DNA of 64,000 nucleotides. Origin: Mobula birostris. Taxonomy: Eukaryota. Below the pieces are notes generated by a model that saw nothing but the letters and a program-made list of their open reading frames with translations, was not told the origin of the DNA and did not search any database. Both the position numbers and the translations under genes were made by a program. This document shows, in pieces, positions 17,155-54,790 of the stretch; within the stretch, counting starts at the first letter, position 1; each line of letters begins with the position of its first letter. The stretch is from positions 222,810,005 to 222,874,004 of the forward strand of contig NC_092370.1 in the NCBI RefSeq assembly GCF_030028105.1, given 5' to 3'.

Positions 17155-19053
17155 ATGGCGCGGCCCAGCCACAGCGAATACGTCCTTCAGCAGCTGAACA
17201 ACCAGCGGGAGTGGGGCTTCCTCTGCGACTGCTGCATCATCATCGGCGACATCTACTTCCGCGCCCACCGTGCCGTGCTGACGGCCTGCAGCTCCTACTT
17301 CCGCATGCTGTTCATCGGTCAGCAGCAGCTGACGGGCGACCTCAGCCTGAGTCAGGCTCCCGTCACCGCCGAGTGCTTCGACCTCATTCTGCAACTCATG
17401 TACCTGGGCCGGCTGGTGGGCGTCCCCTCTGACTTCGAAGAACTTCGCTCGGCCATGACCTTCCTGCAGCTCTACTACGTCCCCCGGAGTCTGGAGGAGG
17501 TGCGGGAGGACAGTGCCCCCTCCCCGCCCTTCGGCCCGCCTAGAGGCTCCATGCTGTTCGGCGTCCGAATGCACGGCCTGCTGCCGGGTGATGGCAAGGT
17601 GCCCAGGGCCGGGCCCAAAGATCAGGCTGGTGATTCGGAGCTGAACGGGATGAGAGAGGCAGCGGCGGTGGCCGACACCAGCCCCGACAGGCCCAGCCGC
17701 AAGCCAAGCCGGGGCAATGGGCTGAAAGGGGGCCGGCTGCACCGGCGGTTTGGCCGCCGCTATACCTGTGACCGCTGTGGTTTTGTCTTCAGCTGCGAGC
17801 GGCTGCTGGACGAGCACTCGCTGACCTGTGACAGCCGCCGGGCCCTGCCCCAGCCCGGGGATCCACCGCTGGCCCGCGGCGGGGGGACGCTCACCCTGGA
17901 CACCATGGCAACAGCCGGGGAAGGAGGAGGCGAGGGAGAGGCGGACTGCACGCGGCCTGAGGTCAAAACAGAGCCCGAGGACACAGCGGCCACCAACCTT
18001 GGTGATCTGACGGTTGTGCAAGTGGCGGCTGAGGGCGAGCTGACTCCTGGCCTGGAGGAAGACCTGTCACCACCTTACAGCCACTTCGGCCAGCCGCCCC
18101 CTCCAGAGCGGGACCCGGGCAGCTGGACGGATGAGGAGGAGGAGGACGAGGAGGAGGACGGGGGCCTAAAGGAGGAGGACGAGGGGGCGGGGGCAGGTGG
18201 CAGCCCGCTGGGCCCGGCCTGTGAGCTGTGCGGCGTGGCGCTGCCCGAGAGTGAGCGGGCTGAGCACTATGTGGCCCACCACCGGGAGAGCGTGTGCGCC
18301 TGCGGCAAGTGCGGCCGCGTCCTGGTGAAAGGCGGCCGCCTGCAGGAGCACGCCGAGCGATGCCTGGGTACCGGCGATCAGGGCCTGGGCCTGGAACAGC
18401 CGCCGGAGGAGGCCTGCGCCTGCCCAGTGTGTGGGCAGGCCTTCCCCGCCTCGTGGCAGCTGGAGGAACACATGCAAGAGCATCAGGTGGCCGAGGAGAC
18501 GGTGGGGGTGACCCCTGACGCCACCTACCGCTGCCCTCACTGTCCGCTGGCCTTCGAGGAGGAGCGGCCATGGGCCGAGCACATGGCGCGATGCGGGCCG
18601 AGCCCGCCTGGGCCAGAGGGGGGGTCGTCGCCCCGCCGCCGGCATGTCTGCCAGCTGTGCGGCCGGGGCTTCTACCAGCGCTGCCACCTGCGAGAACACC
18701 AGGCCACGCACACCCGGGAGCGCGAGTTTACCTGCCCGCTCTGCGGCAAGAGCTTCCTGCGCGAGCGGCTGCTGCGGCTGCACCTGGACATGCACAGGGG
18801 CGAGGCCCGCTACGTGTGCCCGTGCTGCGGCCAGGGCAGTTACCGCAAGCAGGAGCACCTGCGGCACCTGGCCTCGCACCTGGTCGCCGGGCAGGCCCTC
18901 TGCGAAGTCTGCTTCCAGGTGCAGGCCGATGGCCGCATGCTGGAGCGCCACATGCAACTGCACATGCACACCTGCCCGCAGTGCGGTGACCGCTTCAAGC
19001 TCAAGAAGGACCTGAGCACCCACCAGCTCACCAGCCACACCAAGAGGGCATGA
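17155..19053 (+). CDS. ZBTB1: ZBTB1-like BTB/POZ zinc-finger transcription factor, 632 aa, single coding exon
   Basis: MARPSHSEYVLQQLNNQREWGFLCDCC, AECFDLILQ.MYLG, MLFGVRM, RRFGR.YTCD.CGF.FSCE.LLDEH.LTC and GFYQRCHLREH...FLRER.LRLH.DMH all match ZBTB1 as recalled; acceptor at 17107/17108; good Kozak context (AGGATGG). Confidence 0.92.
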   Translation: MARPSHSEYVLQQLNNQREWGFLCDCCIIIGDIYFRAHRAVLTACSSYFRMLFIGQQQLTGDLSLSQAPVTAECFDLILQLMYLGRLVGVPSDFEELRSAMTFLQLYYVPRSLEEVREDSAPSPPFGPPRGSMLFGVRMHGLLPGDGKVPRAGPKDQAGDSELNGMREAAAVADTSPDRPSRKPSRGNGLKGGRLHRRFGRRYTCDRCGFVFSCERLLDEHSLTCDSRRALPQPGDPPLARGGGTLTLDTMATAGEGGGEGEADCTRPEVKTEPEDTAATNLGDLTVVQVAAEGELTPGLEEDLSPPYSHFGQPPPPERDPGSWTDEEEEDEEEDGGLKEEDEGAGAGGSPLGPACELCGVALPESERAEHYVAHHRESVCACGKCGRVLVKGGRLQEHAERCLGTGDQGLGLEQPPEEACACPVCGQAFPASWQLEEHMQEHQVAEETVGVTPDATYRCPHCPLAFEEERPWAEHMARCGPSPPGPEGGSSPRRRHVCQLCGRGFYQRCHLREHQATHTREREFTCPLCGKSFLRERLLRLHLDMHRGEARYVCPCCGQGSYRKQEHLRHLASHLVAGQALCEVCFQVQADGRMLERHMQLHMHTCPQCGDRFKLKKDLSTHQLTSHTKRA

Positions 19054-26599: not shown

Positions 26600-27530
26600 G
26601 AATCAGTTTTAATATCACCGGCATATACCGTGAAATGTGTTGTCTTTGCGGCAGCAGCGCAATGCAATACATAATAATAGAGAGAACAAAACTTGGATTT
26701 CAGTAAATGTTTATAAAATAAGTAGTGCAAAAATAAAAACGTAATGAAGTAAACCTGTAATGCCCATTCAGAAATCTAATGGCAGAGAGGAAGAAGCTGT
26801 TCTTGAATCTGAGTGTATGCCTTCAGGCTTCTGTACCTCCTCGCTGATGGAAGCAACGAGAAGGGGGCATGTCCTGGATGATAGGTGTCCTTAATGATAA
26901 ATGCCGCCTTTTTGAGGAATCACTTCTTGAAGGTGTCCTGGATGCTAGTGCCCGTGATGAAGCTGACTAAGTTTACAAGTCTCTGCAGCTTATTTCGATC
27001 CTGTGCAGTAGCCGCCTGGCCCACCCCCTTTCCAGACGATGATGCAGCCAGTTAAAATGCTCTCCACAGTACATTAGTCGAAATTTGCAATTGTCTTTGG
27101 TGACATAGCAAATCTCCTCAAACTCCTAATGAAATATAGCCACTGTCGTGCCATCTTTGTAGCTACATTGATATGTCAGGTCCAGGGTAAATCCTCAAAG
27201 ATATTGGCACGGGCTAACTTGAAATTATTCACTCTTTCTCCTTCTGCGAGGTCTGGTGTGTGTGTTCTCTCATCTTGCCCTTTCTGAAATGTACAATCAG
27301 CTCTTTGGTCTTACTGACTTTGGGTGCGAGGTTGTTGCTGGATACACCACTCAACCAGCTGATATATCTCACTCCTATACGCCCTCTCGTCACCATCTGA
27401 CATTCTGCTTACAACAATTGTATCGTCAGCTAATATGTGATGGCATTTGAGTTGTGCCTAGCCACACAGTCATGGGTGTGGAGCAGAGGACCGAGCACAC
27501 ATCCGTGAGGTGCACCGGCGTTGACCGTCA
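26600..27530 (-). mobile_element. Rex1/Babar LINE, 5'-truncated
   Basis: Family 3' tail at 26600; truncation within RT (minus strand LTVNAGAPHGCVLGPLLHT) near 27530. Confidence 0.8.
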
Positions 27531-27755
27531 GCTGTTTTCATTGGCCAGAGATCGCCGGTTTGTAATTGGTCCGTGTGCCGGGATGCGACCAATGATGTGA
27601 CCCTGTTACCCCGCTGACAGCAGGGGGTAGTGGACAATTGCCGCTTGGTGATTGGCTGACAGAGCGAGGCGGGACAAAGGCCGCGACGTGATTGGCCGCG
27701 CTCGGGGTGAGTGGGAAACGGGCGGCGACCCTCAGCCCCCGCACGCACGCTCGCG
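27531..27755 (+). promoter_or_regulatory. Hsp70 proximal promoter/5' UTR in a CpG island with five CCAAT boxes
   Basis: ATTGG at 27540, 27565, 27651, 27691; CCAAT at 27589; GC-box-like GAGGCGGGAC near 27666; no TATA box or nGAAnnTTCn array seen. Confidence 0.7.
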
Positions 27756-28038
27756 ATGTCGGTCCGCTCGCCGGCTGTCGGCATCGACTTGGGCACCACC
27801 TACTCCTGCGTCGGCGTCTTCCAGCATGGCAAGGTGGAGATAATCACCAACGATCAGGGCAACCGCACGACGCCCAGCTACGTGGCCTTTACCGACACCG
27901 AGCGCCTGATCGGCGATCCGGCCAAGAACCAGGTAGCCATCAATCCCACCAACACCGTCTTCGACACCAAGCGCCTGATAGGCCGGAGGTTCGACGACCC
28001 GACGGTGCAAAGCGACATCAAGCTTTGGCCTTTCACCG
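27756..28038 (+). CDS. HSPA2: HSPA2-like Hsp70, coding exon 1 (94 codons + 1 nt)
   Basis: [30 protein letters not shown]...WPFT; donor ACCG|GTGAGC at 28038/28039. Confidence 0.93.
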
Positions 28039-29470
28039 GTGAGCGGGAAAGCGATGGGCTCAGGGGTATCTAGAAGGGAGCGATGGGATGGAGTGCAGGT
28101 GTGAAGGGATAGGTTTGGGTGGGAGGGTGGGGAGGTGGTGTGGTGGTGGAGAGGTGGGATGGGTTGTTGAGGGTGGTGTGGTGGGGAGACTCAGCCATGC
28201 GGCCTCTCTGCCGTATGCTGGCAGCTGGAATGGTGTTGTACACCGCCCTCTAGATGTGGTGTACCCTAGGCTCTGCATCTAGAGAGCACCGTGCTCGTTC
28301 ACAGTTACGGAGCACGGGAAGAGGCCCTTTGGCCTAATCAATCCAGGCTGACCAAGATGCCATCTAAGCTAGTTGCAATTTGCACAAAATGTTGGGGGAA
28401 TTCAGCAGGTCAGGCAGCATTCATGCAAAAAAAGTACAGTTGATGTTTCAGGCCGAAACCCTTCAACGTGTGTGTGTTGCTTGGATTTCCAGCATCTGCA
28501 GGGGTTTTTTTTTCTTGTTTGTATTTACAATTTACTTCTGTTTGGCCCTTATTGCGATAAGCCACTTCCTCTGGCAATTCATTCCATACACTTACCACCC
28601 ACTGCATTTCAAATAAAGTTCCCATTAAATTTCTCCCCTCTTAACTTAAATATATGCCCTTTGGTTCTTGATTCCCCAACCCTGCGTAAAAGGCTGGGTG
28701 CATTCACCTCATCTACGTATACTATTTTATACAAAACCGCTTTTCATACAGATTTGGGTTAGTAACTGGTTGGTATGCTATGTTGCCATCAGAAACATGG
28801 CAATACTTGTGGACTGTCCCCAGCACATCCTCTGATTGTGGTCATTGACACAAACAATGCTTTTCACTGTAAGTTTCTATGTACACGTGAGAAGGTAATT
28901 ATTAAGCAGCCCTAGCCTGTCTAGCCTCTCCCTTTCACTTGGTCTCTGGGAAAACTGGCAGTATCCTTATAAATGTATTCTGCACTCTTTCCAGTTTAAT
29001 AACATCTTTCCTACAGCAGGGTAACCAAAACTGGACACAATACTCCAGCTGTGGCCTCACCAGAATCTTGTGTGACAGGAACATAAACCTTCTTGCTGTT
29101 CTATGACTCAGTTATTCAATCCAATAAGTAGTTCTTTAGCAATACGGATCTACACTTGGTTGCCATTTCATTCGGAAACTCCTTCATGATCTTCCGCTGT
29201 AGCCTATCCACTTCAAGGTTTGATTTGCTGTGCATTCAGAGATGCTCTTCTGCACACTACTGTTGTAAAGCGTGGTTATTTGGATTACTGTCAGCATGAA
29301 CCAGTCTGGCCATTCTCCTCTGACCAGGTTTTTGCCCACAAAACAGCTGTCACTGGATTTTTAAAATTTACTTTTTGCACCATTCAGTAAACTCTGGAGA
29401 CAGAGTGAAAATCCCAGGAGATAGCAGTTTCTGAGGTACTCAAACCACCCATCTCACATCAATAATCATT

Positions 29471-30188
29471 AATGACTAGACTCTTGGCAGTGTGGAGGAT
29501 CAGAGGGATCTTGGAGTCCGAGTCCATAGACACTCAAAGCTGCTACACAGGTTGACTGTGTGGTTAAGAAGGCGTACTGTGCATTGGCCTTCAATCGTGG
29601 GATTGAGTTTAAGAGCCGAGAGGTAATATTGCAGCCATATAGGACCCTGGTCAGACTTCACTTGGAGTACTGTGCTCAGTTCTGGTTGCCTCTCTATAGG
29701 AAGGACGTGGAAACCATAGAAAGGGTGCAGAGGAGATTTACAAGGACGTTGCCTGGATTGGGGAGCATTCCTTATGAGAATAAGTTGAGTGAACTTGGCC
29801 TTTTCTCCTTGGAGTGACAGAGGATGAGAGGTGACCTGACAGAAGTGTATAAGATGTTGAGAGGTATTGATCATGTGGATAGTCAGAGGCTTTTTCCCAA
29901 GGCTGAAATGGCTAGCATGAGAGGGCGTAGTTTTAAGGTGCTTGGAAGCAGGTACAGAGGAGATGTCAGGGGTAAGTTTTTTTTACGCAGAGCGTGGTGG
30001 GTGCGCGGAAGGGCTGCCGGTGGAGGCAGAAATGATAGGGTCTTTTAAGAGATTCCTGGATGGATACATGGAGCTTAGAAAAATAGAGGGCTATGAGTAA
30101 ACCTAGATAGTTCTAAGGTAAGGACATGTTCGGCACAGGTTTGTGGGCCGAAGGGCCTGTATTGTGCTACAAGGTTTTCTGTGTTTCT
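29471..30188 (+). mobile_element. CR1 3' fragment inserted into a Tc1-like element
   Basis: LVRLHLEYCAQFW and MRGDLTEVYKML motifs; near-perfect TSD AATAATCATT (29461-29470) / AACAATCATT (30189-30198). Confidence 0.8.
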
Positions 30189-30274
30189 AACAATCATTCA
30201 ATGGTTAAACCACTTGGATCACATTTCCTCCCCATTCTGATGTTTGGTCTGAACAACAATGAACCTCTTAATAC

Positions 30275-33045
30275 AACAAGATGGTGCTGCATACGGCGGC
30301 CCTGTTGTGAGCTCTGTTCCAACTTTACAGTATACTGCTAATTTTTGCGATTTCCTTCACATTTCTTGTTCAATTCGCTGATGGTCACATTAGATATGAT
30401 GGACTGACTCTCCTGAACGTCAGGAAGACGACATTTACCCACTACACGCTGCCTTTTCTACACTGGAAACCCCAACTTGAGCGATCAGTGGGAGGTTCAT
30501 CTACTACACTGCTGCTACCTCGGAGGTGAGGGAAAAGGACCGGCGTTCTCTTGAGGTTGAGACGGTGTACTAATCAGCCGCAACTGCTAGCACACTCCTG
30601 GCTAACGTTCAATCCCTGGACAATAAGCTGTGCGAACTGAGAGCCAGAATTTCCTACCAGTGGGAAACAAAGGAGTGTGACATTTTGTGCTTGGTGGAGA
30701 CCTGGCTGACGGGTGAGATACTGGATCATGCCATCGAGCCCTCTGGGTTCTCCCTGTACTGGGTGGACAGATCAAAAAAGCCTCTCTGGGAAGAGTAAAG
30801 GAGATGGGGTATGCTTCATGATCAACAGTGCTCGGTGTGGCCCCCGGAACGTGCATGCCCTCAAATCCTTTTGTTCCCTGGATCTGGAGTACCTTGTGGT
30901 GCTGTGTTGACCTTTCTGGTTGCTTAGGGAGTTCACAGCTATTATTATCACAGCTGTGTATATTCCGCCATAGGCTGATACTGACCTGGCTGTCAAGGAA
31001 CTGTAGAAGACCATCAGCACACTGGAGACTGCACAACCGGGGGCTGCCTTCATCGTTGCCAGTGATTTTAATAGAGCACGTTGATGGAAGTTTCTCTGGA
31101 GTTTTGTCAACATATCCATGTGAGCACACGGGGATATAGCATACTAGATCACTGCTACTGTCCCTTCTGCAACGCTAACAAAGCGCTCCTTCGCCAAACA
31201 TTTGGAAAATCTGATCACTCCTTCATCCTGCTTTTGCTGAAGTACAGGCAGAAGCTGAAACAAGAGGCAGCCAGAGTTAAAGCCATCCACTGTTGGTCTG
31301 ACCAGTGGGCCTCCATGCTACAGGACTGCCTTGATGACGTCGACTGGAATGTTTTCCATGATGAGGACGTTGTCGCCCAGAAATCACTCAGGGTCTATCC
31401 AAACCAGAAACCCTGGATCAACAGTTCTGTGCGAGCAGCACTTACTGCGCAACACAGAGCTTACGTTGCCAGTGACCAATAGGAACTCAAGAAATGCAGC
31501 TACGGTCTGTGCAAAGCCATCAGGGCAGCAAAACAACAATAACAGGACAAGATTCAGACACAGTTCTCCATCAACAACTCTCGCAGCTTGTGGCAAGGTC
31601 TGCACACTATCGCAGACTTCAAAGCTAAACGCAGTGGGGTTTCCAACATTGCTGCTTCTCCCCCAGATGAGCTAAGTATTTTTCACTCTCGATTTGATGT
31701 TGCCAATACTGAGCCCCTGAGGAGAGCTGCTGAGGCTGAAGTACGCAAGTGTTTCCAACGAGTGGACAGTCGCAAGGCTACAGGACAAGACGGCATCGCA
31801 GGGTGGGTACAGAGTGTGCACGGCACAGCTGGCAGCTGTGTTTACAGGCATTTTTAACCTCTCTCCCAGTGTAGAGTGCAGCACATTGACTCTCCGTAAC
31901 TGCTTTTGACAAGTTAAGGTTGAGACACCTTCTTGAATTGTCACTGGCATACAGGCATGATTGGGCAAGGAGTTCTAGGATATTGACTCAGTGATGATGA
32001 AGGAACACCAATATATTTCCAATTTAGGACACTGAGAGAACCGTTCAGGTGGTGGTGTTCCCAGGCATGAGCTCTTGTCCTGCCTGGTGGGTAGTGGTCA
32101 CTGGTTTGGAATGTGGTGTCAGAGTGATCTGCTTGATTAGCTTCAGTGCATTTCGTAGAGTGTTCACACTGCATCCACCATGTGGATGGAATTGAAGCTT
32201 AGAGTGGTGTCTGACATGCTGGTCATGATCAGTACTTTCTGGATAATCTTGAGTTTCTTGATATGTTCTGCAACTGTACTCTTTCAAGCAAGTAGAGGGT
32301 ATACCATTACCTTCCTAATTTATGGTGGTGCAATATCTTTGGAACGTCAAGAGGTGCTGTCAAATAACTTGCATGTCTGGCACTTTTATAAAGGGAGCAT
32401 TGATTGAGGAATCAATGTTAATAAAGCATTGGGAGAATCCACGATCATCTTAAGTGCAATGCTGTAAGGTCTTTTGTACCAGGATGAAAAAGGGGCCTCC
32501 TCATATTCTGCCTGAGTCATCTACAACAAGTTGGCATGAAAGCTGAATTGCCCAATTGTACATAATTTATACCCACTGTGTCCCTTTTTTCTCTCTCCTT
32601 ATCTACCTACTTCATCTTAAGTAAACCCCAACACCTCCTAACTAGCTGCATCACTGCCTGGTATTGGAAATGTACTTCCCTCAATCACAAGACTCTACAG
32701 AGAGTGGTGTGGACAGCCCAGTGCATCTGTAGATGTGAACATCTCACTATTCAGGACATTTACAGAGCCAGGTGTGTACCACAAACTGTTCCAGCTGCTA
32801 CCATCTGGGAAATGGTACTGCAGCATAAAAGCCAGGACCAACAGGCTCCGGGACAGCTGCTTCCCCCAGGCCGTTAGACTGATTAATTCACACTGATACA
32901 ATTGTATTTCTATGTTATGTTGACTGTCCTGTTGGATATACTATTTTTATAAATTACACATTGCACACTTAGACAGAGACAAAACGGAAAGATCTTTACT
33001 CCTCATTTATATGAAAGACGTAAGTAATAAAGTCAGTTCAATTCA
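30275..33045 (+). mobile_element. Rex1/Babar LINE, decayed, internally deleted and interrupted
   Basis: APE start LANVQSLDNKLCELRARISYQ..CLVETWL at 30598, LDHCY..FGKSDH, PNQKPWINS, WQGLHTIADFK; 3' part LTSCITAWY at 32640. Confidence 0.8.
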
Positions 33046-33439
33046 TCTATGTCTGCATGCTTTTAGGCATTGAGTTGCTGCTACATGATTTGCAGACTAG
33101 GTCTTTTGACTTCTAGAATCTGCACTTATGTTTTAATTATTATCTGTTTCCCCTTAAACTTAAAAGCTCTTCTGATCTTAAAAGCTCTTGTAGATTTATC
33201 AAACATAAGTGCTATACATAAAACCATATTTGCTCTATGTAATCCTGATTTTTATCTTTGAATCTTTATACAATGTCTAATATGGACATACACAATTCAC
33301 CTAACAATGTTAGGCTATCTTGCACTGTAGCAATTTAATTTTCTGTACCCTCATTCTTAATTAGGGAAATTGTTTTGTTTCTTCCTAATTTAACGTAAAC
33401 ATTGTTGTTTGTCATCTATATTAACAATATGGAATACAA

Positions 33440-36400
33440 CCTCATTCTCCTGCCTTCTCCGTGTAACATTTCATGGCCTGACTTGTCAAGTATCTATCAA
33501 CCTCTTCTTAAGTACATCCAATGACCTGGCCTCCACAGCTGCCTGTGGCAATGAATTCCACAGATTTGCCACCCTCTGACTAAAGAAATTCCTACTAATC
33601 TCTGTTCTAAAAGGAATTCCTTCTATTCTGATGCTGTGCCCTTTAGTCCTAAACTACCCCACTATAGGAAACATCCTCTCCACATCCACTCTATCTAGGC
33701 CTTTCAACATTCAATAGATTTCAATAAGATCCTCCCTCATTCTTCTAAATTCCAGCAAGTACAGGCCAAGAACCATCAGGTGCTTCTCATATGATAAGCT
33801 TTTCATTCCCAGAATAATTTTTGTGAACCTCCTTTGAACCCTCTCCAGTTTCAACACATCCTTTTTAAGATGAGGGACCCAAAACTGCTTATAGTACTCT
33901 TAAGTGAGGCCTCACCAGTGCCTTATAAAGCCTCAGAATTAGATCCTTGTTTTTATATTCTCATCCTGAAATGAATGCTAATGTTCATTTACTTTCCTTA
34001 CCACCAACTCAACCTGCAAGTTAACTTCTAGGGAATCCTGCATGAGGACTCCCAAGTCCCTTTGCACCTCAGATTTTTGAATTCTCTCCCTGTTTAGAAA
34101 ATAATCTGTGCTTTTATTTCTTCTACTAAAGTGCATAACCATATATTTCCCGACACTGTATTCCATCTGCCACTTCTTTGCCCATTCCCCTAATCTAAGT
34201 CCTTCTGTAACTTCTCTGCTTCCTCAAAACTACATGCCTCACCACCTTCCTTTGTATTGTCCTCAAAGTTGGCCGTAAAACCATCAATTCCATCATCCAA
34301 ATCATTGATGTTTGACATAAAAAGAAGTGGTCCCAGCACCACTAGCTAATCAGAAAAGGTTACCTTTATTTCCACTCTGTGCCTCCTGCCAGTCAGCCAA
34401 TGTTCTATTCAAGTTAGTAACTTTCCTATAACAACCTGGGCTATTATCTTTCTAAGCAGCCTTGTAAGCAGCACTTCATAAAAGCCCTTCTGAAAATTCG
34501 AGTATACAACATCCATCCTCCTTTGTTTATCCTGCTTGTTATTTATTCAAAGAATTCCAATAGATTTGTCAGGCAAGATTTTCCCTTAAGGAAAATAGAG
34601 ATAGAGTGGATAGCCAGCGCCTCTTCCCCAGGGCACCACTGCTCAATACAAGAGGACATGGCTTTAAGGTAAGGGGTGGGAAGTTCAAGGGGTATATTAG
34701 ATGAAGGTTTTTTACTCAGGGAGTGGTTCGTGCGTGGAATGCACTGCCTGAGTCAGTGGTGGAGGCAGATACACTAGTGAAGTTTAAGAGACTACTAGAC
34801 AGGTATATGGAGGAATCTAAGGTGGGGGTTTATATGGGAGGCAAGGTTTGAGGGTCGGCACAACATTGTGGGCCAAAGGGCCTATACAGTGCTGTACTAT
34901 TCTATGTTCTATGAAACCACGCTGACTTTGGCCTATCTTACCAGGTGCCTCCAAGTATTTCTAAACCCCACAATTGACTCCAACATCTTCCCAATCACTG
35001 AGGTCAGGCCAATTGATCTTTAATTTCCTTTCTTCTGCCTCCCTCCCTTCTTGGAGAGTGGAGTGACATTGCAGTTTTCCAATCCTCTGGATCCATGCCA
35101 GAATGTAGTGATCCTTGATCATTACTAATGCCTTGACAGCATCTTCAGCTATCTCTTTAAAACCCTGGGTTGTCGTCCATCTGGTCCAGGTGACGTATCA
35201 ACCTTCAGACCTTCCAGCTTCCCAAGCACTTTTCCCTAGTTATGGCAACTGAACTCACTTCTGATCCCTGACTCTCTTGAGCTTCTGGCATACTGTTCAT
35301 GACTTCCACAGTGAAGACTGGTGCAAAGTGCTTATTTTGTCCATCCTCCATTTCCCTCTTTCCTCATTACCACTTCTTTAGTGTCATTTTCCTGTGGTCT
35401 GATGTCTGCTCTTGCCTCTCTTTTGTTCATTATATATCTTTAAAAAACTTTTGTAATCTGCTTTGATATTAGTCTGCTTAACTTCATATTTCATCTTTTC
35501 CCTCCCTATGGTTTTTTAGTTGCCTTCTGTTGGTTTTTACATTTGGCAATCCTCTAACTTCACACTAATTTTTGCTTTATTAAATGCTCTTTTTAGCTTT
35601 TATGTTGACTTTGGCTTCCCTTGTCAGCCACAGTTATGTCATCCCATCTTTAGACTATCTCTTATTTGGGATGTATCTATCTGAGCTTTCCAAATTGCTC
35701 CCAGAAACTCCAGCCATTGCTGCTCTGCCATCAACCCTGGTAGTGTCCCCTTCCAATCAACTCTGGCCAGCTCCTCTCATGCCTCTGTAATTCCCTTTAC
35801 TCCATGATACATCTGACTTCAGCTTCTCCTTTTCAAATTGCAAGATGGAGTCTATCATATTATCACTGCATCCTAAGGGTTCCTTTACCTTTAGCTCCTT
35901 AATCAAATCCAGTTCATTACACAACATCCATTCCAGAATAGCTGATCTCCTAGTGGGCTCAGCCACAAGCTGTTCTAAAGAGCCATCTCATCGGCATTCT
36001 ACAAATTCTCTCTTGGGGTCCATAATCAGCACCAAACTGATTTTCCTAATCTACCTGCATATTGGAATCCCTCATGATGATCGTAACATTACCCTTTTGA
36101 CATCTATTTTCTTCTACCTGTTGTAATTTGTAGCCCACATCCTGTCCACGTTTCGGATGCCTGTAAATAACTCCCATCAGGAACCCTTGCAATTCCTCAA
36201 CTCTACCCACAAGGATTCTACATCTTCTGATCCTATACCACCTCTAAGGATTTGATTTCATTCTTTACCAACAGAGCATGCCACCCCTTCTGCCTTTCTG
36301 CCTGTCCTTTTGATACGTCGAGCATCCTTGGATGTTAAGCTCCCAAACATAATCTTCTTTCAGCCACAATTGAATGATGCCCATGTCATACCTACCAATC

Positions 36401-37640
36401 TAACTGCACTACAAGATTATCTGCCTTGTTCCATATACCGTGTGCCTTTAAATATATGTCAGTCCTGTATTCATCACTCGTTGATTTTGTCCCCCGTTAC
36501 ACTGCAACTCATCCCACTGACTGCAATTTTGCCCTATCATCAACCTCTCCTTGCTCAAGCAGAGCAGTCTCATTACACACTGCCTCTGCTTGTATACCAA
36601 CTGTGCCATCCTCAGCCCTATCACTGGCTTTCCTGTCAAAACCTGCCCACAAGGCTTTTGGCACCCCCCCCTGGTTCAGGTGTAACCTGCCCCTTTTGTA
36701 CAGGTCATACCTTCCCCAGAAGAGAAAGGTATTCTGCCCCCTGCACCAGTTCCTCACCCATGCATTCATCTGCCAAATCGCCCTATTCTTACCCTCACTA
36801 GGTGTGGCATGGGCAGCAATCCAGAGGTTACTACCCTGATGGTCCTGCTTTTCAGCTTTCCACCTAGCTCCCTAAATTCTCTCTTCGGGGCCTGCTCCCT
36901 TTTCCTATCTTTGTCTTTGGTGCCAATATGTACCAAACTTCAGGCTGCACCCCCTTCCCCTTTAGAATGCCGTGGGTTCGATCCGAAATGTCTATGATCC
37001 TGGCATCTGGAAGGCAACGTACAATCTGGTGTCTCTATGGTGTCCACAGAATCTCGTGTTTACTCTTAACTACCAGATCCAGTCATTGCGGCTCCCACCG
37101 GTAAGTCATCAACCCCCCACCCTCATCCCCTCACCAAACAGTGTCTAAAGTGGTATACTTATTATTGATGGGAATGGCCACAGGAGTATTCTGCACTGAC
37201 TGCCCATTTTCTTTCCCTCTCCTGACAGTCACCCAGGAACCTGCCTCCTGCAAGTTGGGGGTGACTACCTCATGTAGCTCCTACCCATCACCTCCTCAGT
37301 TTTCCATATGAAGCGAAGGTCATCGAGCTGCAGCTCTGGTTCCTTGACATGTCGTGTCCTCTGAAGAACTGAACTTGGTGCACCTGGTGTAGATATAGTT
37401 ATCCAGGAGGCTAGAGGTCTCCCAGAATTCCCACATCTCACAAAGAACACAACACAGCTCCTGGAGCCATCGTCACTGCTCTACGTATGTACTAACAAAG
37501 AATGAAGAAGAAACTTGCTGGATACTTGCCTTGCTTAAGTTTGTTGAGCCAAAGTTTCCCCACTCTTTAACACTGGTCCACTCACACAATGGCCACTCCG
37601 CTTGTCCCTACCTTATTTTTATTTACCCATGCTGATAAAT
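33440..37640 (-). mobile_element. Near full-length decayed CR1 (ORF1 esterase + ORF2) with a nested CR1 3' end at about 34595-34912
   Basis: ORF1-like MNAWVRNWC...FWGRYDLYKR.RLHLN; endonuclease EPTRRSAILEWMLCNE..EPLGCSD; RT and 3' UTR remnants. Confidence 0.8.
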
Positions 37641-38112
37641 CATCAGAAAATGGCAAAAACCCATGAATGCTCCCTTTTTTTTAAAAACCCCTAACTTGTG
37701 GACCTGTGAGCTGCCTCCTCTCTTGCTCCTGATACGATTGTGCTGCTGGAAAAATGCTGACAAGTGTGAGGTGTTTCACTTTGGGAGGAGAAACTGAGGT
37801 AGTACTTTAAAAAGAGTGAACAGTAGGGCATTAAAGGATGTGTTGAACAGGGGGATCTGGGAACACAAATCCCTAGTTCCTTGAAAGTAGCATCACGGGT
37901 TTAAAAGGTCTTCAGTCTTCCCAGCATCGAGGACATCTTCAAAAGGTTATACCTCAAAAAGGCTCCATCCATCATTAAGGACACCCGTCACCTGGGACAT
38001 GCCCTCTTCTCATTCCTACCATCAAGTAGGAGGTACAGGAGCCTGAAGACATGCTCAATATTTTAGAAACAGCTTCTTCCACTCTGCCCCCAGATTTCTG
38101 AATGGACAATGA

Positions 38113-40255
38113 CCATAAGACCATAAAACAAAGGAGCAGAAGTCAGCCATTCAGCCCATCGAGTCTGCTTCGCCATTTTATCATGAGCTGATCCATTCTC
38201 CCATTTAGTCCCACTCCCCTGCCTTCTCACCATAACCTTTGATGCCCTGGCTACTCAGATACCTATCAATCTCTGCCAATGACTTGGCCTCCACTGCTGC
38301 CCATGGCAACAAATTCCATAGATTCACCACCCTCTGACTAAAAAAATTTCTTCACATCTCTGTTCTGAATGGGCGCCCTTCAATCCTGAAGTCATGCCCT
38401 CTCGTACTAGACTCCCCGATCATGGGAAACAACTTTGCCACATCCACTCTGTCTATGCCTTTCAACATTCGAAATGTTTCTATGAGGTCTCCCCTCATTC
38501 TTCTAAACTCCAAAGAATACAGTCCAAGAGCGGACAAATGTTCCTCATATGTTAACCCTCTCATTCCGGGAATCATTCTAGTGAATCTTCTCTGTACCCT
38601 CTCCAACGTCAGCATATCCTTTCTTAAATAAGGAGACCAAAACTGCCCACAGTACTCCAAGTGAGGTCTCACCAGCGCCTTATAGAGCCTCAACATCACA
38701 TCCCTGCTCCTTTACTCTATTCCTCTAGAAATGAATGCCAACATTGCATTCGCCTTCACTACTGACTCAACCTGGAGGTTAACCTTAAGGGTATCTTGTA
38801 TGAGGACTCCCAAGTCCCGTTGCATCTCAGAGCTTTGAATTCTTTCCCTATTTAAATAATAGTCTGCCCGTTTATTTCTTCTGCCAAAGTGCATAACCAT
38901 ACACTTTGCAACATTGTATTTCATTTGCCACTTCTTTGCCCATTCTTACAATCTATCCAAGTCTCTCTGCAGACTCTCCATTTCCTCAGCACTACCGGCC
39001 CCTCCTCCTATCTTCATATCATCAGCAAACTTAGCCACAAAGCTATCTATTCCATAATCCAGATCATTGATGTACAATGTAAAAAGAAGCGGTCCCAACA
39101 TGGACCCCTGTGGAACACCACTGGTAACCGGCAGCCAACCAGAATAGGATCCCTTTATTCCCACTCTCTGTTTCCTGCCAATCAGCCAACGCTCCATCCA
39201 TGTATGTAACTTTCTCATAATTCCATGGGCTCTTATCTTGTTAAGTAGCCTAATGTGTGGCACCTTGTCAAAGGCCTTCTGAAAATCCAAATATACAACA
39301 TCCACTGCATCTCCCTTGTCTAGCCTACTGGTAATTTCCTCAAAAAGTTGTAATAGGTTTGTCAGGCAGGATTTTCCTTTAAGGAATCCATGCTGAGTTC
39401 TGCCTATCTTGTCATATGCCTCCAGGTACTCCGTATCCTCATCCTTGACAATCCACTCCAACAACTTCCCAACCACCGATGTCAAGCTAACAGGTCTATA
39501 ATTTCCTTTTTGCTTCCTTGCCCCCTTCTTGAATAGCGGAGTGACATTTGCAATCTTCCAGTCCTCCGGAACCATGCCAGAATCTATCGACTTTTGAAAG
39601 ATCATCGCTAATGCCTCCACAATCTCCACAGCTACTTCCTTCAGAACACGAGGGTGCATTCCATCTGGTCCAGGAGATTTATCTACCTTTAGACTATTCA
39701 GCTTCCTGAGTACTTTCTCTGTCGTAATTGTGACTGCGCACACTTCTCTCCCCTGCCACCCTTGAGTGTCTGGTATACTGCTGATGTCTTCCTCAGTGAA
39801 GACTGATGCAAAATACTTGTTCAGTTCCTCTGCCATCTCCTCATCTTCCATTACAATTTCTCCAGCATCATTTTCTATCAGTCCTTTACTTACTCTCACC
39901 TGTCTTTTACTCTTTATATACTTGAAAAAGCTTTTAGTATCCTCTTTGATATTATTTGCTAGCTTCCCTTCATAGTTAATCTTTTCCCTCTTAATGACCT
40001 TCTTAGTTTCCTTTTGTAAGGTTTTAAAAACTTCCCAATCCTCTGTCTTCCCACTATTTTTTGCTTCCTTGTATGCCCTCTCCTTTGCTTTGACTTCTCT
40101 TGTCAACCACGGTTGCATCCTTTTTCCATTCGAAAATTCTTCTTTTTTGGAATATACCTGTCTTGCACCTTCCTCACTTCTCGCATAAACTCCAGCCACT
40201 GCTGCTCTGCTGTCTTTCCCGCCAGTGTCTCTTTTCCGTCAACTTTGGCCAGTTT
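38113..40255 (-). mobile_element. Young 5'-truncated CR1 LINE with a long open RT segment
   Basis: 417-aa ORF (KSPGPDGMHPRVLKE, YRPVSLTS, YLDFQKAFDKVPH, GVPQGS.LGPLLF, FADD); 8-bp TSD GACAATGA at 38105-38112 and 40256-40263. Confidence 0.92.
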
Positions 40256-40991
40256 GACAATGAATCCTCGATATTTTTCTTTTTTGTTCTCTTTTTGCAC
40301 TGCTTACTTACCTGTATGTTTTCTTTTTGTAATTCAAAGTGTATTGTTATGTATTATATCTACTACCTCTGTTTATAGAAAAAAAACATATTTCACAACA
40401 TTTGCCAGTGATATTAAATCTGATTCTGATAATGAGAGCTTTTGGCACATTGGCCTTCGTAAATTAAAGGAGTTGGGATGTTGTGTTGACAGTGCATTGG
40501 TGAGACCAAATTTTAAGTAAAATCTGCAGTTTTTGTCACCTACTTACAAAGAAGATATCAATGAGTTTGAAAGAGTATGGAAAAAATTTACGAGGATGTT
40601 GCCAGAACTTGAGGACCTAAGTTACAGGAAAAGGTTGAATAGGTTCATTCCCTAAGTGTCACTTCCAACAGAAGTGTTCATTCTGTAGGAGAATGAGGGG
40701 AGATTTTGCAGAGCTATACAAAAATTTGAGTGGTATAGCTAGGGTAAATGTAAGCAGGTTTTTTTTTACTATTTGGGGAGACTAGAACAAGAGTTCATAT
40801 GTTAAGGGTGAAATATTGAAGGTGAACCTGGGAGTGGGGGGAACTTTGATCAGAGTGTGGAATGAGCTGCCAGCTAAAGTGGTGGATTGCATTTCAATTG
40901 CAATGTTTAAGAGAAATTTGGGTAAGTACATGGGTGGGAGGGCTATGTTCCAGCTGCAGGTTGATGGGCCTAGGTAGAGTAACAGTTCCAC

Positions 40992-41597
40992 ATTGGCCTT
41001 TATTAATCAAAGTATTGAGTATAAGAGCTGGAATGTTATGATGAGGTTGTATAAGGCATTGGTGAGGCCGAATCTGGAGTATTGTGTTCAGTTTTGGTCA
41101 CCAAATTACAGGAAGGATATAAATAAGGTTGAAAGAGTGCAGAGAAGGTTTACAAGGATGTTGCCGGGACTTAGAAACTCAGTTACAGAGAAAAGTTGAA
41201 TAGGTTAGGACTTTATTCCCTGGAGCGTAGAAGAATGAGGGGAGATTTGATAAGAAGTATATAAAATTATGATGGGTATAGATAGAGTGAATGCAAGCAG
41301 GCTTTTTCCACTGAGGCAAGGGGAGAAATAAAGCGGAGGACATGGGTTAAGGGTGAGGGGGGAAAAGTTTAAAGGGAACATTGGGGGGGCTTCTTCATAC
41401 AGAGAGTGGTGGGAGTATGGAATGAGCTACCAGACGAGGTGGTAAATGCGGGTTCTTTTTTAACATTTAAGAATAAATTGGACAGATAAATGGATGGGAG
41501 GTGTATGGAGGGATATGGTCCGTGTGCAGGTCAGTGGGACTAGGCAGAAAATGGTTCGGCACAGCCAAGAAGGGCCAAAAGGCCTGTTTCTGTGCTG
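40992..41597 (+). mobile_element. CR1 LINE 3' fragment
   Basis: LYKALVRPNLEYCVQFWSPNYRKDINKVERVQRRFTRMLPGL and (TTTCTATG)n-like tail. Confidence 0.85.
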
Positions 41598-41929
41598 TAG
41601 TTTCTATGGTTTCTATGAATTAGATGGGCTGAAGGACCTATTTCCTTGATGTAGTACTCTGACTTTGTTATAGAATCTAGAAGATTTTGGAAGGTGACCA
41701 GTTTGTCTGTGGACCAATTTGCTCAAATAGGAGAAAGTTATTTCCACCATCTCACCATTTTTGGAGTTTATAGGTTAATCTATGTAAATGATCTCTGGAA
41801 GGGACAAGTTTCTGTTGGGGAAAGTACTTGGTTGCTAGGGGCAGGTGGGGTGGAGAAACTGCTTCTTTAACTAAGAAATGGTGTTCATTCAACATTTAAC
41901 AATATATTTCTTCGTTCTTCATCTCCCAG

Positions 41930-43569
41930 TGATCAATGATGGAGGGAAACCCAAAGTCCAAGTGGAGTACAAAGGGGAAAATAAGACATTCTTTGCTGAG
42001 GAGATTTCCTCTATGGTGCTAACAAAAATGAAAGAGATAGCAGAAGCGTACCTAGGCAGTCAAGTCACCAATGTCGTCGTCACAGTGCCAGCTTACTTTA
42101 ATGATAGTCAAAGACAAGCTACCAAAGATGCTGGAACCATTGCTGCTTTAAATGTGATGAGAATAATCAATGAACCAACAGCAGCTGCTATCGCTTATGG
42201 ACTAGACAAAGCAGGACCTGGTGAGCGTAATGTTCTCATCTTTGACCTGGGAGGCGGAACTTTTGATGTTTCGATCCTTACCATCGAAGATGGCATCTTT
42301 GAGGTAAAGTCCACTTCTGGAGATACTCACCTGGGGGGAGAGGATTTTGACAGTCGCATGGTGAACCACTTTATTGAGGAATTCAAACGGAAATTTCAGA
42401 AGGACATCTCCCAGAACAAGCGGGCAGTGAGACGTTTGCGCACAGCTTGTGAGCATGCCAAAAGGACTCTGTCCTCGAGTACACAGGCCAGTGTTGAGAT
42501 TGACTCCTTGCATGACGGTGTAGACTTCTACACATCAATCACCAGGGCCAGGTTTGAAGAATTGAACAGTGATCTCTTCAGAGCTACACTGGAGCCCATT
42601 GAGAAAGCCCTTCACGATGCCAAGATTGACAAATCTCGGATTCAAGATGTTGTCCTTGTGGGAGGCTCCACAAGAATCCCTAAAATCCAGAATATACTTC
42701 AAGACTTTTTCAATGGGAAGGAACTGAACAAAAGCATCAATCCCGATGAGGCAGTAGCTTATGGTGCCGCAGTGCAGGCAGCCATTTTAACAGGTGACAA
42801 GTCTGAAAATGTACAGGACCTGTTGCTCCTGGATGTCGCTCCCCTGTCTCTTGGTATTGAGACAGCTGGTGGGATCATGACTCCCCTCATTAAACGAAAC
42901 ACCACCATCCCTACCAAACAGACACAGGTCTTCACCACTTACTCAGACAACCAAACTAGTGTCCTTATTCAAGTCTATGAAGGGGAAAGAGCAATGACCA
43001 AAGACAACAACCTGCTTGGTACATTCAGCCTGGTCGACATCCCACCAGCTCCACGTGGACTGCCACAGATAGAGGTGATCTTTGATATAGATGCCAATGG
43101 CATCCTGAATGTTTCAGCAGTTGACAAGAGCACAGGACACACAAACAAAATCACCATTACCAACAACAAGGGCCGGCTGAACAAAGATGACATTGAGCGT
43201 ATGGTGCAGGAGGCAGAGCACTATAAGGCAGAGGACAACCTGAACAGGGAGAAGGTGACTGCCAAGAACATGCTTGAGTCCTATGCATACAACATGAAGC
43301 AGGCCGTACAGGATGAGAACCTGAAAGGGAAAATCAGTGAGGAGGATGGGAAGGCTATCCTGGCAAAATGTCAGGAAGTCCTCAGCTGGTTAGAAAGAAA
43401 CCAGACAGCAGAGAAGGAGGAGTTGGATTATCAGCAGAAAGAGCTAGAGAAAGTCTGTAAACCACTTCTCAAGTTCTTCAGATGTCCCTGCAGTGGGATA
43501 CGTCCAGGAGCCAGCAGTTCCTCGGTGCCCAGCAGCCCAACTGGACCCACAATTGAAGAGGTTGACTGA
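41930..43569 (+). CDS. HSPA2: HSPA2-like Hsp70, coding exon 2 (full protein 640 aa, ends GPTIEEVD)
   Basis: Hsp70 signatures [46 protein letters not shown]; HSPA2-like residues [31 protein letters not shown]; lies between ZBTB1 and PPP1R36. Confidence 0.93.
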
Positions 43570-45067
43570 GTGAGATGGCTAAGGGCATTGGAAGAACTAC
43601 TTCTTTTTCTTGTTCCCTCAGCATTAATGGGGCGAGGAGGGAGGGAACACTTAACTATGTATTATCGATAACAAGCCGTTCAGATAATACAAAGGACTCA
43701 ACTGCTTATTTCTCTATCTTACTGTAGATTAATTATCAGAGTCCAATTACACATTATCACATACATATACTTTGTTAAAATTTAGAGATACAGCAGGGTA
43801 ACAGGCCTTTCTGACCCAACTAGCCCATGCTGCCCAGTTACACTTGTGCAACAAATTAACCTATTAATCTGTACATCTTTGGAATGTGGGAGGAAACCAG
43901 AGAGTCCAGAGAAGAGCCACACAGTCACGAGGAGAACCTTAAGCTCCTTACAGACAGTGGCAGGAATTGAACTTGGGTCACTGCACTGGCCCTGTAATGG
44001 TGTTATGCTAACTGCTGTGCTACCTTGCTTCCTGTTATTGCTGTCCCTAAATCATTGCCTTTAAAAATTATCACCAGGTACTCTGAATTCACAAACAGCA
44101 TGCATGATCTTTACCGTCATAGAGCAATGCAGAACGAATGCAGGCCCTTTGATCCAGAGTCCATGCTGACCATGGAGCCATCCCAGCTAATCCCAACTTC
44201 CCATATCACTCTAATCTAAGCCTACCCTTCCATGTACCTATCCAAGTGCTTCTAAAATGATACCATTGTAACAGCCTCAACCCCTCTGCTAGCAGCTAGT
44301 TATATGCACCACCTTTTTATATGGGAAAAAGTTGCACCTTGGTTTCCTTTTAAATATTTCCAAAACTATGCCCCTAGTTTTGGTCTGTCCTATCCTGCAG
44401 CACAGACTGTTGCCTTCCACCTTATCTATGCCTTTCATAATTTTAAACATTACTATAAGGTTGCCCCTTTTTCTCATATCTTCCGGAGAATAAAAACCTA
44501 GCCTAATCTTTAGCAACTTCATACGTTGGTAAAGGTTGTGCTGTTGATTTAATCTGGAGTAGAAATAACTAATAAAATGAAAAATAATTTTTTCATTCTT
44601 AATGCGATAGCTATTTGAAACTTGCTGCTTTAAGGTTCTTTCCATGCTAAAGCAGTTAATGGGGAAGAGATCTACCGCACAGCAACAGGTCCTTCGGTCC
44701 ACAATGTTGTGCTGAACCTATTAAATTAGTAATCAAATGGCTAGCTAAACTAGTCTCATTGGCCTACACAGTGTCCATATCCTTCCATCTCCCTCACATT
44801 TATGTGCCTATCTTAATGCCTCTTAAAAGCATCTAAATAAATAAATAAATATATATATAATATAAAAAAAATTTCCCCTCACATCTCATTTTAAAATTAA
44901 GATGAGTACCCCTCTGGTATTAGACATTTTCTATCTTTGCCCCTCGTAGCCTTATAAACCTCAATCAGATGTTCCTTCACCCTCTGCTGCTGCAGGGCAA
45001 ACACCACAAGTTTGTCCAACCTCTCAGTATAGCACACACCTTCTAATCCTGACGGCATCCTGGTAAA

Positions 45068-53400: not shown

Positions 53401-54790
53401 GAGACACATGATAAAATAGGCTGTAGGCAGCATGGTTTTCTTAAAGGAAAATCTTGCCGACAAATCTGTTGGAATTCTTTTGAAGAAATAACAAGCAGGA
53501 TAGACAAAGGAGAATAGGTTGATGTTGTGTACTTGGATTTTCAGAAGACCTTTGATAAGGTGCCACACATGAGGCTGCTTAACAAGCTACAAGTCCATGG
53601 TATTACAGGAAAGATTCTAGCTGGATAACGCAGTGGCTGATTGGCAAGAGACAAAGACTGGGAATAAATTGAGCCTTTTCTGCTTGGCTGCCAGTGACTA
53701 GTGGTGTTCCACAGGGGTCTATGTTGGGACTGATTCTTTTCATGTTATAGGTCAATGATCTGGGTGATGGAATTGGTGGTTTTGTTGCACAGTTTGCAGA
53801 CAATGAGAAGATAGGTGGAGGTATTTTTGAGGAAGTAGAGAGGCTTAAATAATTGCAAGTATGGAGGAAGAACTACAAAACTGAATTGATATAATTGTTG
53901 AAGAAAGTGCAAAAATGGGTCTATCTATCAATTGCAAAAAGACAGAATATATGGTGATATCCAAAAAGAAGGAGAATCCTATCTGCAGGCTGACAATAAA
54001 CAGGGAAGACAGAAAACAAGTGCAGAACTTTTGCTACTTTGGAAGCTGGGTGATATCAGATGGCAGGTGCAACTTGGACATGAAAAGAAGAATAGGGATG
54101 GCAAAAGACACGTTTATGGGAATGAAGAGTATACTGACCAAAACTAAACTAGGCATGACAACCCGCCTCAGAGTACTGAAATGTTACTTTTATCCAGTTA
54201 TGTTGTATGGCTCAGAATGTTGGACAATATCTAGTAACATGAGGAAACAAATTGTAGCAGCAGAGATGTGGTTTTTGAGGAGGATGCAAAGAATATCATG
54301 GACAAAACGAATATGTTACGAGGATATCATGAACAAAGCAAATGCAAAAAGAGAATGTATGAGATCATGAAAAGGCAACATAACTTCATTGGACATGTGA
54401 TTAGGAAAGAGGAGTTAGAATGCATGGTAATTATAGGAAAGATTGAAGGGAAGAAAGCAAGAAGAAGACAAAGACAAATGATGATGGAAACAGCAGCCAG
54501 AGAACTGGAAATGGATACCAATGAATTGATCCACTTGACCCAAAACAGGAGTGTGTGGGCCATGGCAGTCAAAGCTCAAACTGGGCATAGCATCTGTTGA
54601 TGATGATGAGAGAGGCTACAGAAGGATTTAGACAGATTAGGAGAATGGACAAAGAAATGGCAGATAAAATACAGTGTCAGGAATTGTACGGTCATGCACT
54701 GTGGAGAAGAACTTGAAAGGGAGGAATTTCTTTAGCCTGAGAGTGGTGAATCTGTGGAATTTCTTGCCACAGGCAACTGTGCAGGCCAGG
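50500..54790 (+). mobile_element. Near full-length decayed CR1 (ORF1 + ORF2) interrupted by an RTE
   Basis: ORF1 zinc-finger and esterase remnants (VIGDL, LKWEGEQPEV); endonuclease VGITESWL, EPLGESDHN; RT KSPGPDGLHPRVLK; resumes after 54617. Confidence 0.85.
53846..54608 (+). mobile_element. RTE-clade LINE 3' fragment
   Basis: MGLSINCKKTEYMV...RRIGMAK..F...LYGSECW...EMWFLRRM.RISW...FIGHVIRK...GKIEGK; (TGA)n tail; 9-bp TSD AGAGAGGCT at 53837-53845 and 54609-54617. Confidence 0.88.

Follow-up and report, generated by a model that had tools for sequence, protein, structure and literature searches.

Intronlessness in Hsp70 genes is usually linked to expression during stress. Among the human members of the cytosolic group, HSPA1A, HSPA1B and HSPA1L are intronless, the coding region of HSPA6 is a single exon, and HSPA2 has its whole coding region of 1,917 nt in one exon, next to a 5' untranslated exon, according to the available portion of PMC2266713; in the same portion HSPA8 stands as the only member of the group with several coding exons, eight in number, with one splice separating codon 188 from codon 189, and the authors see HSPA2 and HSPA1 as products of HSPA8 retrotransposition. 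Here, I describe a locus of the manta ray Mobula birostris that departs from this pattern. The DNA analysed is a stretch of 64,000 nucleotides (NCBI RefSeq assembly GCF_030028105.1, contig NC_092370.1, forward strand, positions 222,810,005 to 222,874,004), hereafter the window, in which positions are counted from the first letter. It holds what is probably a functional and expressed HSPA2 orthologue with one U2-type intron inside the codon of Val95, gained once in the cartilaginous-fish lineage and later enlarged.

New introns in the coding regions of otherwise intronless or intron-poor vertebrate genes have been described in teleosts, namely in melanocortin receptors and in slc26a1 (PMC3151243 and PMC12357937, as far as their available text goes). 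The manta case resembles them in this respect; however, teleosts are a lineage of high intron turnover, whereas the manta intron belongs to the cartilaginous fishes and is very old. In the part of PMC3964593 at hand, 603 gains are assigned to the stickleback lineage, and the elephant shark shows the fewest intron changes, below any bony vertebrate. The open-access literature searched yielded no account of an Hsp70 intron in sharks or rays.

The two coding parts of the gene and the intron between them are listed in Table 1. Exon 1 ends in ...TTCACCG and the intron opens with GTGAGC, giving the donor CCG/GTGAGC (here and below, a slash marks a junction); at the other end the intron reads ...CATCTCCCAG up to 41929, its terminal letters ...TTCTTCATCTCCCAG closing in CCCAG, and exon 2 starts with TGATCAAT. 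Pyrimidines occupy 19 of the 21 bases of 41907-41927, just before the terminal CAG. The coding total of 283 + 1640 = 1923 nt amounts to 640 codons and a stop, with exact codon continuity, and GT...AG borders, a polypyrimidine tract, a candidate branch point and an exactly restored frame, the features of a U2-type intron, are all found together. The spliced product is identical to XP_072095660.1 (P0123), the 640-aa "heat shock-related 70 kDa protein 2-like" of M. birostris, at 94 of 94 residues in exon 1 (residues 1-94) and at 545 of 545 in exon 2 (residues 96-640). The spliced 640-aa model is thus already present in the RefSeq annotation. A preliminary description of this DNA, made from its letters alone, had joined two open reading frame (ORF) halves 13.9 kb apart by GT-AG splicing in phase 1 at Val95 into a 640-aa protein, and the boundaries, the frame and the 100% identity with the RefSeq protein bear it out; its warning that automated annotation may split or truncate the gene was mistaken as regards RefSeq, whose model is exact, and came true in an older whale-shark EukProt model, which is truncated to exon 1 (see below).

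Both halves belong to a single, complete protein. With the 640-aa P0123 as query, tblastn against the whole window returned residues 1-94 at 27756-28037 and 95-640 at 41929-43566, each at 100%, as the sole significant pieces, and no further Hsp70 piece was found in the 64 kb. The Pfam family HSP70 (PF00012) covers profile positions 1-87 in exon 1 (E = 1.3e-39) and 93-594 in exon 2 (E = 4.2e-208). In phmmer comparisons with PDB chains, residues 3-93 of exon 1 fall on human HSPA2 4-94, and exon 2 falls on human HSPA2 97-640 and HSPA1A 95-641; therefore no residue is lost or doubled. The protein ends in GPTIEEVD and, with its full-length domain and EEVD terminus, has the marks of a cytosolic Hsp70 of the HSPA1/2/8 group.

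Removal of the intron from RNA was followed in contigs of four sequencing runs, compared with positions 41400-44000 at 90% likeness: two RNA-like runs, X17 (the window's organism, 115 M letters) and X9 (a relative about 1.3% diverged, 170 M letters), and two DNA-like runs, X1 (possibly the source of the assembly) and X10 (a third organism). Transcripts of the gene were found in the RNA-like runs. A 2099-nt contig of X9 lies on 41929-43706 with 23 differences and carries 319 extra upstream letters unlike the intron, a length for which exon 1 (282 nt) and a 5' untranslated region (UTR) of about 37 nt would account. X17 contributes a contig of 199 nt that matches 41929-42089 without a difference and extends upstream by another 38 letters, equally unlike the intron, as well as two more exon 2 contigs with 0 differences each. 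Depth over the unique intron stretch 41661-41921 is 0-0.06 in X9 and X17 and 4.7-7.2 in X1 and X10, and X9 has a depth of 23.9 throughout exon 2. A depth of about 24 in a run of 170 M letters is impossible for single-copy DNA of a genome of several gigabases; X9 therefore behaves as RNA, and its contigs begin at the acceptor, so that 41930 marks a used acceptor. The intron is removed from RNA, in runs whose type was guessed and with the letters of the exon 1-exon 2 junction unread.

In the DNA-like runs, a 2302-nt contig of X1 covers 41593-43894 without a difference and unbroken across the acceptor, and an 809-nt contig of X10, of which 553 nt lie on 41615-42163, crosses it with 4 gaps and 13 differences; in two species, hence, the DNA is shown to run on unbroken through the acceptor. 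Against this background it is scarcely credible that the gene is dead and broken by insertions, or that the assembly is misjoined, the halves not being spliced together. The guessed RNA status of X9 and X17 and the unread junction would leave room for such an account; yet both frames are open with exact codon continuity and canonical splice signals, the depth-24 contigs of the 170 M-letter run stop exactly at the acceptor, the DNA of an independent species (X10) crosses it, and full-length models of the protein exist in at least 20 species of cartilaginous fishes.

These models, of 640-641 aa (650 in the chimaera), form the family matched by the exon 2 translation, with members in rays, skates, sharks and one chimaera. 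PDB scores do not separate the paralogues (HSPA1A 948.8 bits vs HSPA2 948.5). A maximum-likelihood tree was computed from 36 rows chosen among 381 proteins (639 columns, LG+C20), with plant, yeast, nematode and fluke sequences as the outgroup. Its 11 cartilaginous-fish proteins form one clade (support 100/100) on a long stem branch (0.13), and this clade is sister to six sauropsid HSPA2 proteins (97/89); mammalian HSPA1, amphibian hsp70 and ray-finned-fish hsp70 make up a separate clade (100/98), and HSPA8 falls outside the HSPA2 and HSPA1 group.

Synteny points the same way. The gene directly preceding the Hsp70 gene, 8.7 kb upstream on the same strand, is ZBTB1: its ORF is matched best by Mobula hypostoma ZBTB1 (99%), and among the 120 matches listed all family-named ones are ZBTB1, from chimaera to chicken and bat, the remainder being unnamed or hypothetical/uncharacterized. 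The human gene order is AKAP5, ZBTB25, ZBTB1, HSPA2, PPP1R36, PLEKHG3 (Table 2 of PMC4868023, the source being available in part). In the zebra shark Stegostoma tigrinum, the RefSeq model P0130 (isoform X1, 1005 aa) is a ZBTB1-Hsp70 read-through fusion, to whose ZBTB1 part the N-terminal 313 aa of the window's ZBTB1 are 60% identical, and the ZBTB1-HSPA2 linkage therefore holds in a shark too. By tree and synteny together, the manta gene is identified as the HSPA2 orthologue, and the preliminary description, which had called it an HSPA2-type cytosolic Hsp70, agrees with both the sauropsid sister group and the ZBTB1 neighbour. It shares with tetrapod HSPA2 (human HSPA2; chicken 'HSP70'), besides this neighbour and its place in the tree, about 80-83% protein identity over exon 2 and the PTIEEVD end, and differs in that the human coding region is one exon while that of the manta is split at codon 95.

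Two further observations concern these proteins. In P0130, the first ~360 aa of ZBTB1 run in frame to about residue 8 of the Hsp70 (...GGTL/VGIDLG), and such an in-frame fusion implies that transcription runs on from ZBTB1 and that exon 1 contains an acceptor. At the C-terminal tail (window 43450-43566), KP[LIV].KF[FL]RC[PG]C[SA]G takes the place of the NPII.KLYQ and ensuing Gly-rich stretch of other cytosolic Hsp70s; this two-cysteine motif just before EEVD is conserved in all the cartilaginous-fish HSPA2-like proteins read, the chimaera included (P0007, P0012, P0017-P0020, P0025).

The position of the intron was compared with that of other Hsp70 genes by aligning 120 listed N-terminal Hsp70 fragments (P0262-P0381) to P0123 and recording where the Hsp70 match ends. 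Breaks at reference 137-140 occur in 22 of the 120: 17 at 137, the HSPA8-type position, where they continue with K+V as in the read-through of a phase-0 donor, and 5 at 138-140. Another 21 break at 113 (...KGERK/V...), with smaller groups at 106-111. The clusters at 113 and 137-140 might be lineage-typical intron positions, the fragments serving as a crude intron map. At residue 94 a single fragment breaks, and it is the whale-shark orthologue. The introns of HSPA8 presumably lie, among other places, after nucleotides 205, 411 and 564, that is, at codons 69, 137 and 188, and host SNORD14. HSPA8 (Hsc70) is alike in being a cytosolic Hsp70 with spliceosomal introns in its coding region, but it has no break at 94/95, and its later introns are absent from the manta gene, where exon 2 is one block of 1,640 nt; furthermore, the whole window, scanned with Rfam, has no family at gathering score, and the manta intron holds no snoRNA or other known RNA gene. 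The preliminary description had likewise placed the intron at a non-HSPA8 position and noted the absence of the other HSPA8 coding introns, and it had taken the mammalian HSPA2 and HSPA1 coding regions to be intronless, as PMC2266713, in its available portion, has them for human. On the HSPA2 side, several bird proteins that are complete or nearly so (608-640 aa) are encoded by contigs only 2336-3094 nt long (P0053, P0057, P0088, P0091, P0110, P0118), which therefore leave no room for a sizeable intron. A metagenome scan for the pattern WPFT + G/GTRAG hit at least 119 loci, with no eukaryotic Hsp70 among those listed and one uninterrupted DnaK-like gene, and was uninformative either way.

Presence of the intron in other cartilaginous fishes was read from protein isoforms and truncated gene models. 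Isoform X2 of the skate Rhinoraja longicauda (P0126, 555 aa) begins MRRRLPAWQ/VINYDGKPK and departs from X1 exactly at Val95; in the window, RRRLPAWQ is encoded by exon 1 in its +2 frame (ORF 27692-28042), which ends at an internal CAAG/GTGGAG, and the isoform most likely results when a different donor, lying within exon 1, is spliced to this same acceptor. In the electric ray Narcine bancroftii, isoform X2 (P0021, 518 aa) begins MVLTKMKE at the first Met of exon 2, as would be expected if another first exon joins the same acceptor. The whale-shark EukProt model P0263 (EP00061 g30489.t1) is exactly 94 aa long, ends in ...DIKHWPFT and agrees with the shark orthologues along this length; a contig ending by chance at codon 94 would be a coincidence of about 1 in 640, and the model probably stops there with a gene finder unable to bridge the intron after exon 1. 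The shark isoforms P0128 and P0133 begin at Met62 and run through the Val95 site, which makes them uninformative; their starts may share a cause with the read-through model P0130. In two close relatives of the manta, evidence comes from DNA, namely the X10 contig across the acceptor and the DNA words shared by X5-X8. The intron boundary can accordingly be traced, at the level of protein models, in three batoid orders and probably in a shark, which would place the intron before the batoid crown and probably also before the ray-shark split.

Certain shark isoforms also differ within exon 2. Carpet-shark isoforms P0132, P0138 and P0133 are 19 residues shorter in the lid (...ERS/KKEEFEH...), an in-frame skip of 57 nt inside exon 2, and Carcharodon X2 (P0128) leaves out a far larger block at the C-terminus. 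These skips could be exitron-like splicing or annotation artefacts.

The two exons differ sharply in composition: exon 1 has a GC content at third codon positions (GC3) of 0.87 and a CpG observed/expected ratio (o/e) of 1.12, exon 2 a GC3 of 0.51 (0.37 across its first 90 codons) and a CpG o/e of 0.31. Such a break, with the first exon in a CpG island and the gene body methylated, is slow to build and fits a long residence of the exons in differing chromatin and methylation settings, and the gain of the intron is therefore old.

As to its content, 56% of the intron matches other places in the window at 65-85% identity, and the blocks that can be told apart are mostly long interspersed nuclear element (LINE) copies (Table 1), which occur outside the gene too. 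The ORF 29560-29817 resembles, by eye, ORFs 38352-38699(-) and 44289-44702(-); Pfam gave no family for it. Pfam found 0 families in ten more ORFs of the intron and its flanks, the sole recognisable reverse transcriptase (RT) being ORF 38946-40199. The expansion of the intron by insertions, anticipated in the preliminary description, agrees with the share of repeated sequence and this one RVT_1 ORF. Tandem repeats amount to one weak G-rich array near the donor; G-triplets near 5' splice sites are known splicing enhancers, and this stretch may act as one. The same LINE family was seen in the intron and on both flanks of the gene (9.4-14.5, 33.4-36.6, 37.9-40.3 and 51.7-54.4 kb), its copies 66-77% alike, and ORF 52987-53517 runs parallel to the RT ORF of the intron in the N-terminal portion of the latter. 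Exon 2 is flanked by two very-high-copy short repeats, at 41400-41660 and 43749-44000, whose depth reaches 5e5 in the DNA runs and is high in the RNA-like runs too.

A transposon-derived, introner-like origin of the intron, which the preliminary description had thought possible, finds no support: its borders carry no target-site duplication compatible with the frame, in a test of low power after such a time. A single repeat is shared by the borders, GTGA (the intron start; the last intron base plus TGA), rejected as a target-site duplication because it would require a frame-shifted ancestor. The present content of the intron is best described as later LINE debris, from which the source of the first insert is unrecoverable.

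Table 1. Coordinates of the Hsp70 gene, its intron and the surrounding features of the window.
Feature	Positions	Strand	Remarks
Exon 1, coding part	27756..28038	+	Met1-Thr94 plus first base of Val95; ATG at 27756; 283 nt = 94 codons + 1 nt
Intron	28039..41929	+	13,891 nt, GT-AG, phase 1, split codon G/TG = Val95
Exon 2, coding part	41930..43569	+	Last two bases of Val95 to Asp640; stop 43567-43569; 1,640 nt uninterrupted
Candidate branch point (TTAAC), polypyrimidine tract, AG acceptor	41895..41929	+	TTAAC about 30 nt upstream of acceptor
Internal CAAG/GTGGAG in exon 1	27830..27839	+	Junction 27833/27834, phase 1; putative alternative donor, counterpart of skate isoform X2 donor
CpG-island-like promoter region holding exon 1	27500..28250		GC 0.60-0.63 and CpG o/e 1.02-1.16 over 27500-27999; flanks CpG o/e 0.09-0.5
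Probable 3' UTR	43570..43706	+	About 137 nt; end of X9 2099-nt contig at 43706
G-run-rich stretch	28100..28190	+	Dense GGG/GGTGG (slash separates motifs) from about 60 nt past donor; TRF array 28118-28157
LINE-like block	29548..30259		Matches elsewhere in window at 66-79%
Old LINE copies	33437..36550		1.2-1.7 kb matches, 72-73%, with window stretches 9.8-11.0 kb and 51.7-53.4 kb
LINE copy with 417-aa reverse-transcriptase ORF (38946-40199)	37914..40252	-	RVT_1 E = 2.7e-25; 76% to 9.4-11.1 kb and 52.7-53.8 kb
Very-high-copy interspersed repeat, 3' part of intron	41400..41660		Summed contig depth 1e4-5e5, all four runs
Very-high-copy repeat directly past gene	43749..44000		Summed contig depth 1e3-1.6e5
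ZBTB1 coding ORF	17155..19053	+	632 aa from Met at 17155; BTB + C2H2 zinc fingers; synteny anchor

An intron full of transposon copies, with DNA evidence for its 3' end only from close relatives diverged by 1-3%, invites the thought that it was gained recently, among manta and stingray relatives alone, and that traces of the inserted element are still present. This is very improbable. The departure of the skate X2 isoform at Val95, the start of Narcine X2 and the end of the whale-shark model at residue 94 all lie outside so narrow a group; the strong contrast in composition between the exons argues for an old separation, the repeat copies are just 65-85% alike and hence old, and the borders are without a frame-compatible target-site duplication. 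The preliminary description had spoken of a lineage-specific gain: the gain is favoured by parsimony, but it is neither recent nor narrow, as the skate, electric-ray and whale-shark boundaries indicate.

The explanation preferred here runs as follows. A single insertion most likely entered a previously single-exon HSPA2 once the bony vertebrates had branched off, but while rays and sharks still shared a lineage; the intron then grew to 13.9 kb by insertions of LINEs and other repeats, and normal splicing removes it to yield the 640-aa protein. A single gain on the cartilaginous-fish branch is the shortest account because the sampled paralogues other than HSPA8, and the bony-vertebrate HSPA2 genes, are without coding introns, and HSPA8 is without an intron at this place.

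Several points weigh against this explanation. The RNA status of X9 and X17 is a program's guess, no run being recorded as RNA, and the join of exon 1 to exon 2 is suggested by the fit in length, the frame and the RefSeq model, with the junction letters unread. The evidence from sharks is one truncated gene model and no DNA, and the chimaera protein (Callorhinchus, P0025) is uninformative on the intron, so that a gain confined to elasmobranchs and an older one are both possible. The tree is without mammalian, coelacanth or amphibian HSPA2 rows and without an approximately unbiased (AU) test. The HSPA8 intron positions given above agree with the 188/189 splice of PMC2266713, in its available portion, and with the cluster at 137, the position at codon 69 being presumptive. 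Finally, the polarity of the change, a gain instead of an ancestral retention, follows from parsimony across paralogues.

This last point bears on the view that gnathostome HSPA2 had the intron from the outset, or inherited it from still earlier, and that it was lost in bony vertebrates, for instance through recombination with reverse-transcribed mRNA or conversion from an intronless HSPA1. Intron loss by retro-recombination is an established process, the cartilaginous-fish clade is sister to all sampled bony-vertebrate HSPA2, and a gain followed by a loss is only one step costlier than a gain. Nonetheless, the human members of the cytosolic group other than HSPA8 are single-exon genes, and the proposed origin of HSPA2 and HSPA1 from HSPA8 by retrotransposition gives an intronless start (both in the available portion of PMC2266713); the HSPA8-type breaks, in turn, fall near 137 (22 of 120) and not at 94. 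An ancestral intron is therefore regarded as unlikely, though as the most serious competitor of the single gain.

The fragment alignment further raises the question of whether the site at codons 94-95 is a hot spot for intron insertion or cryptic donors in Hsp70 genes, through parallel events or an ancient intron. The Hsp70 match ends at reference 92-95 in 8 of the 120 fragments. Two of these come close to the manta site: P0352 (an ENA contig of 548 nt) reads ...WPFT and then VSIM, resembling the read-through of a GTAAGT donor after codon 94, and P0363 (Hucho hucho, a cluster of 50) breaks after ...WPFKV and continues with HFTCIIN. Their breaks lie within 1-3 nt of the manta site, which may be prone to recurrent events, and they count among the points against the preferred explanation. 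Yet none of the eight breaks at the nucleotide and phase of the manta intron; P0356 is a frameshifted copy, P0366 and P0355 merely end, P0347 ends with five odd residues, and P0337, a mammal-like HSPA8 fragment, was set aside. I regard a hot spot as a remote prospect. In a bolder form of the same idea, codons 94-95 may be a recurrent insertion site in the Hsp70 genes of unrelated eukaryotes.

The ends of the gene offer some clues to its regulation. No heat-shock element GAAnnTTCnnGAA (with at most 1 mismatch, on either strand) was found from 24056 to the ATG, that is, over 3.7 kb upstream, and the same scan over the whole window gave 18 matches against 20.8 expected; several ATTGG/CCAAT boxes lie in the promoter region. 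At the 3' end, AATACA, presumably a variant of the poly(A) signal, stands about 15-20 nt upstream of 43706. The available part of PMC4326386 reports HSPA2 as non-inducible. The absence of a heat-shock element and the presence of a CpG island with CCAAT boxes would be compatible with a non-inducible gene, and the missing element and the presence of the intron suggest that heat inducibility may have been lost.

Starting from these clues, it may be speculated that the gain, more than about 250 million years old, marks the exit of cartilaginous-fish HSPA2 from the stress-gene regime, the intron being no neutral baggage but fixed and functional in a chaperone gene that has re-specialised. The gain would then coincide with the long stem branch (0.13) and with the new conserved, Cys-bearing C-terminal motif; exon 1, within its CpG island, would lie 14 kb away from the methylated gene body, and expression would depend on splicing, which heat shock inhibits. 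This idea is offered tentatively and is, on balance, doubtful.

The finding does not change the understanding of how introns or Hsp70 proteins work, and the gene model itself was already in RefSeq. Its use lies elsewhere. In fragmented shark and ray assemblies, Hsp70 models comprising exon 1 only or exon 2 only are to be seen as truncations, as exemplified by the 94-aa whale-shark model and the 518-aa and 555-aa isoforms. Vertebrates seldom gain introns, and a gain that is clean and defined in phase, in a famously intronless family, makes a useful marker; present in rays and probably in sharks, the intron could be used in chondrichthyan phylogeny as a rare genomic character. Moreover, the gene provides a natural setting in which to test whether Hsp70 genes remain without introns since splicing fails under heat stress.

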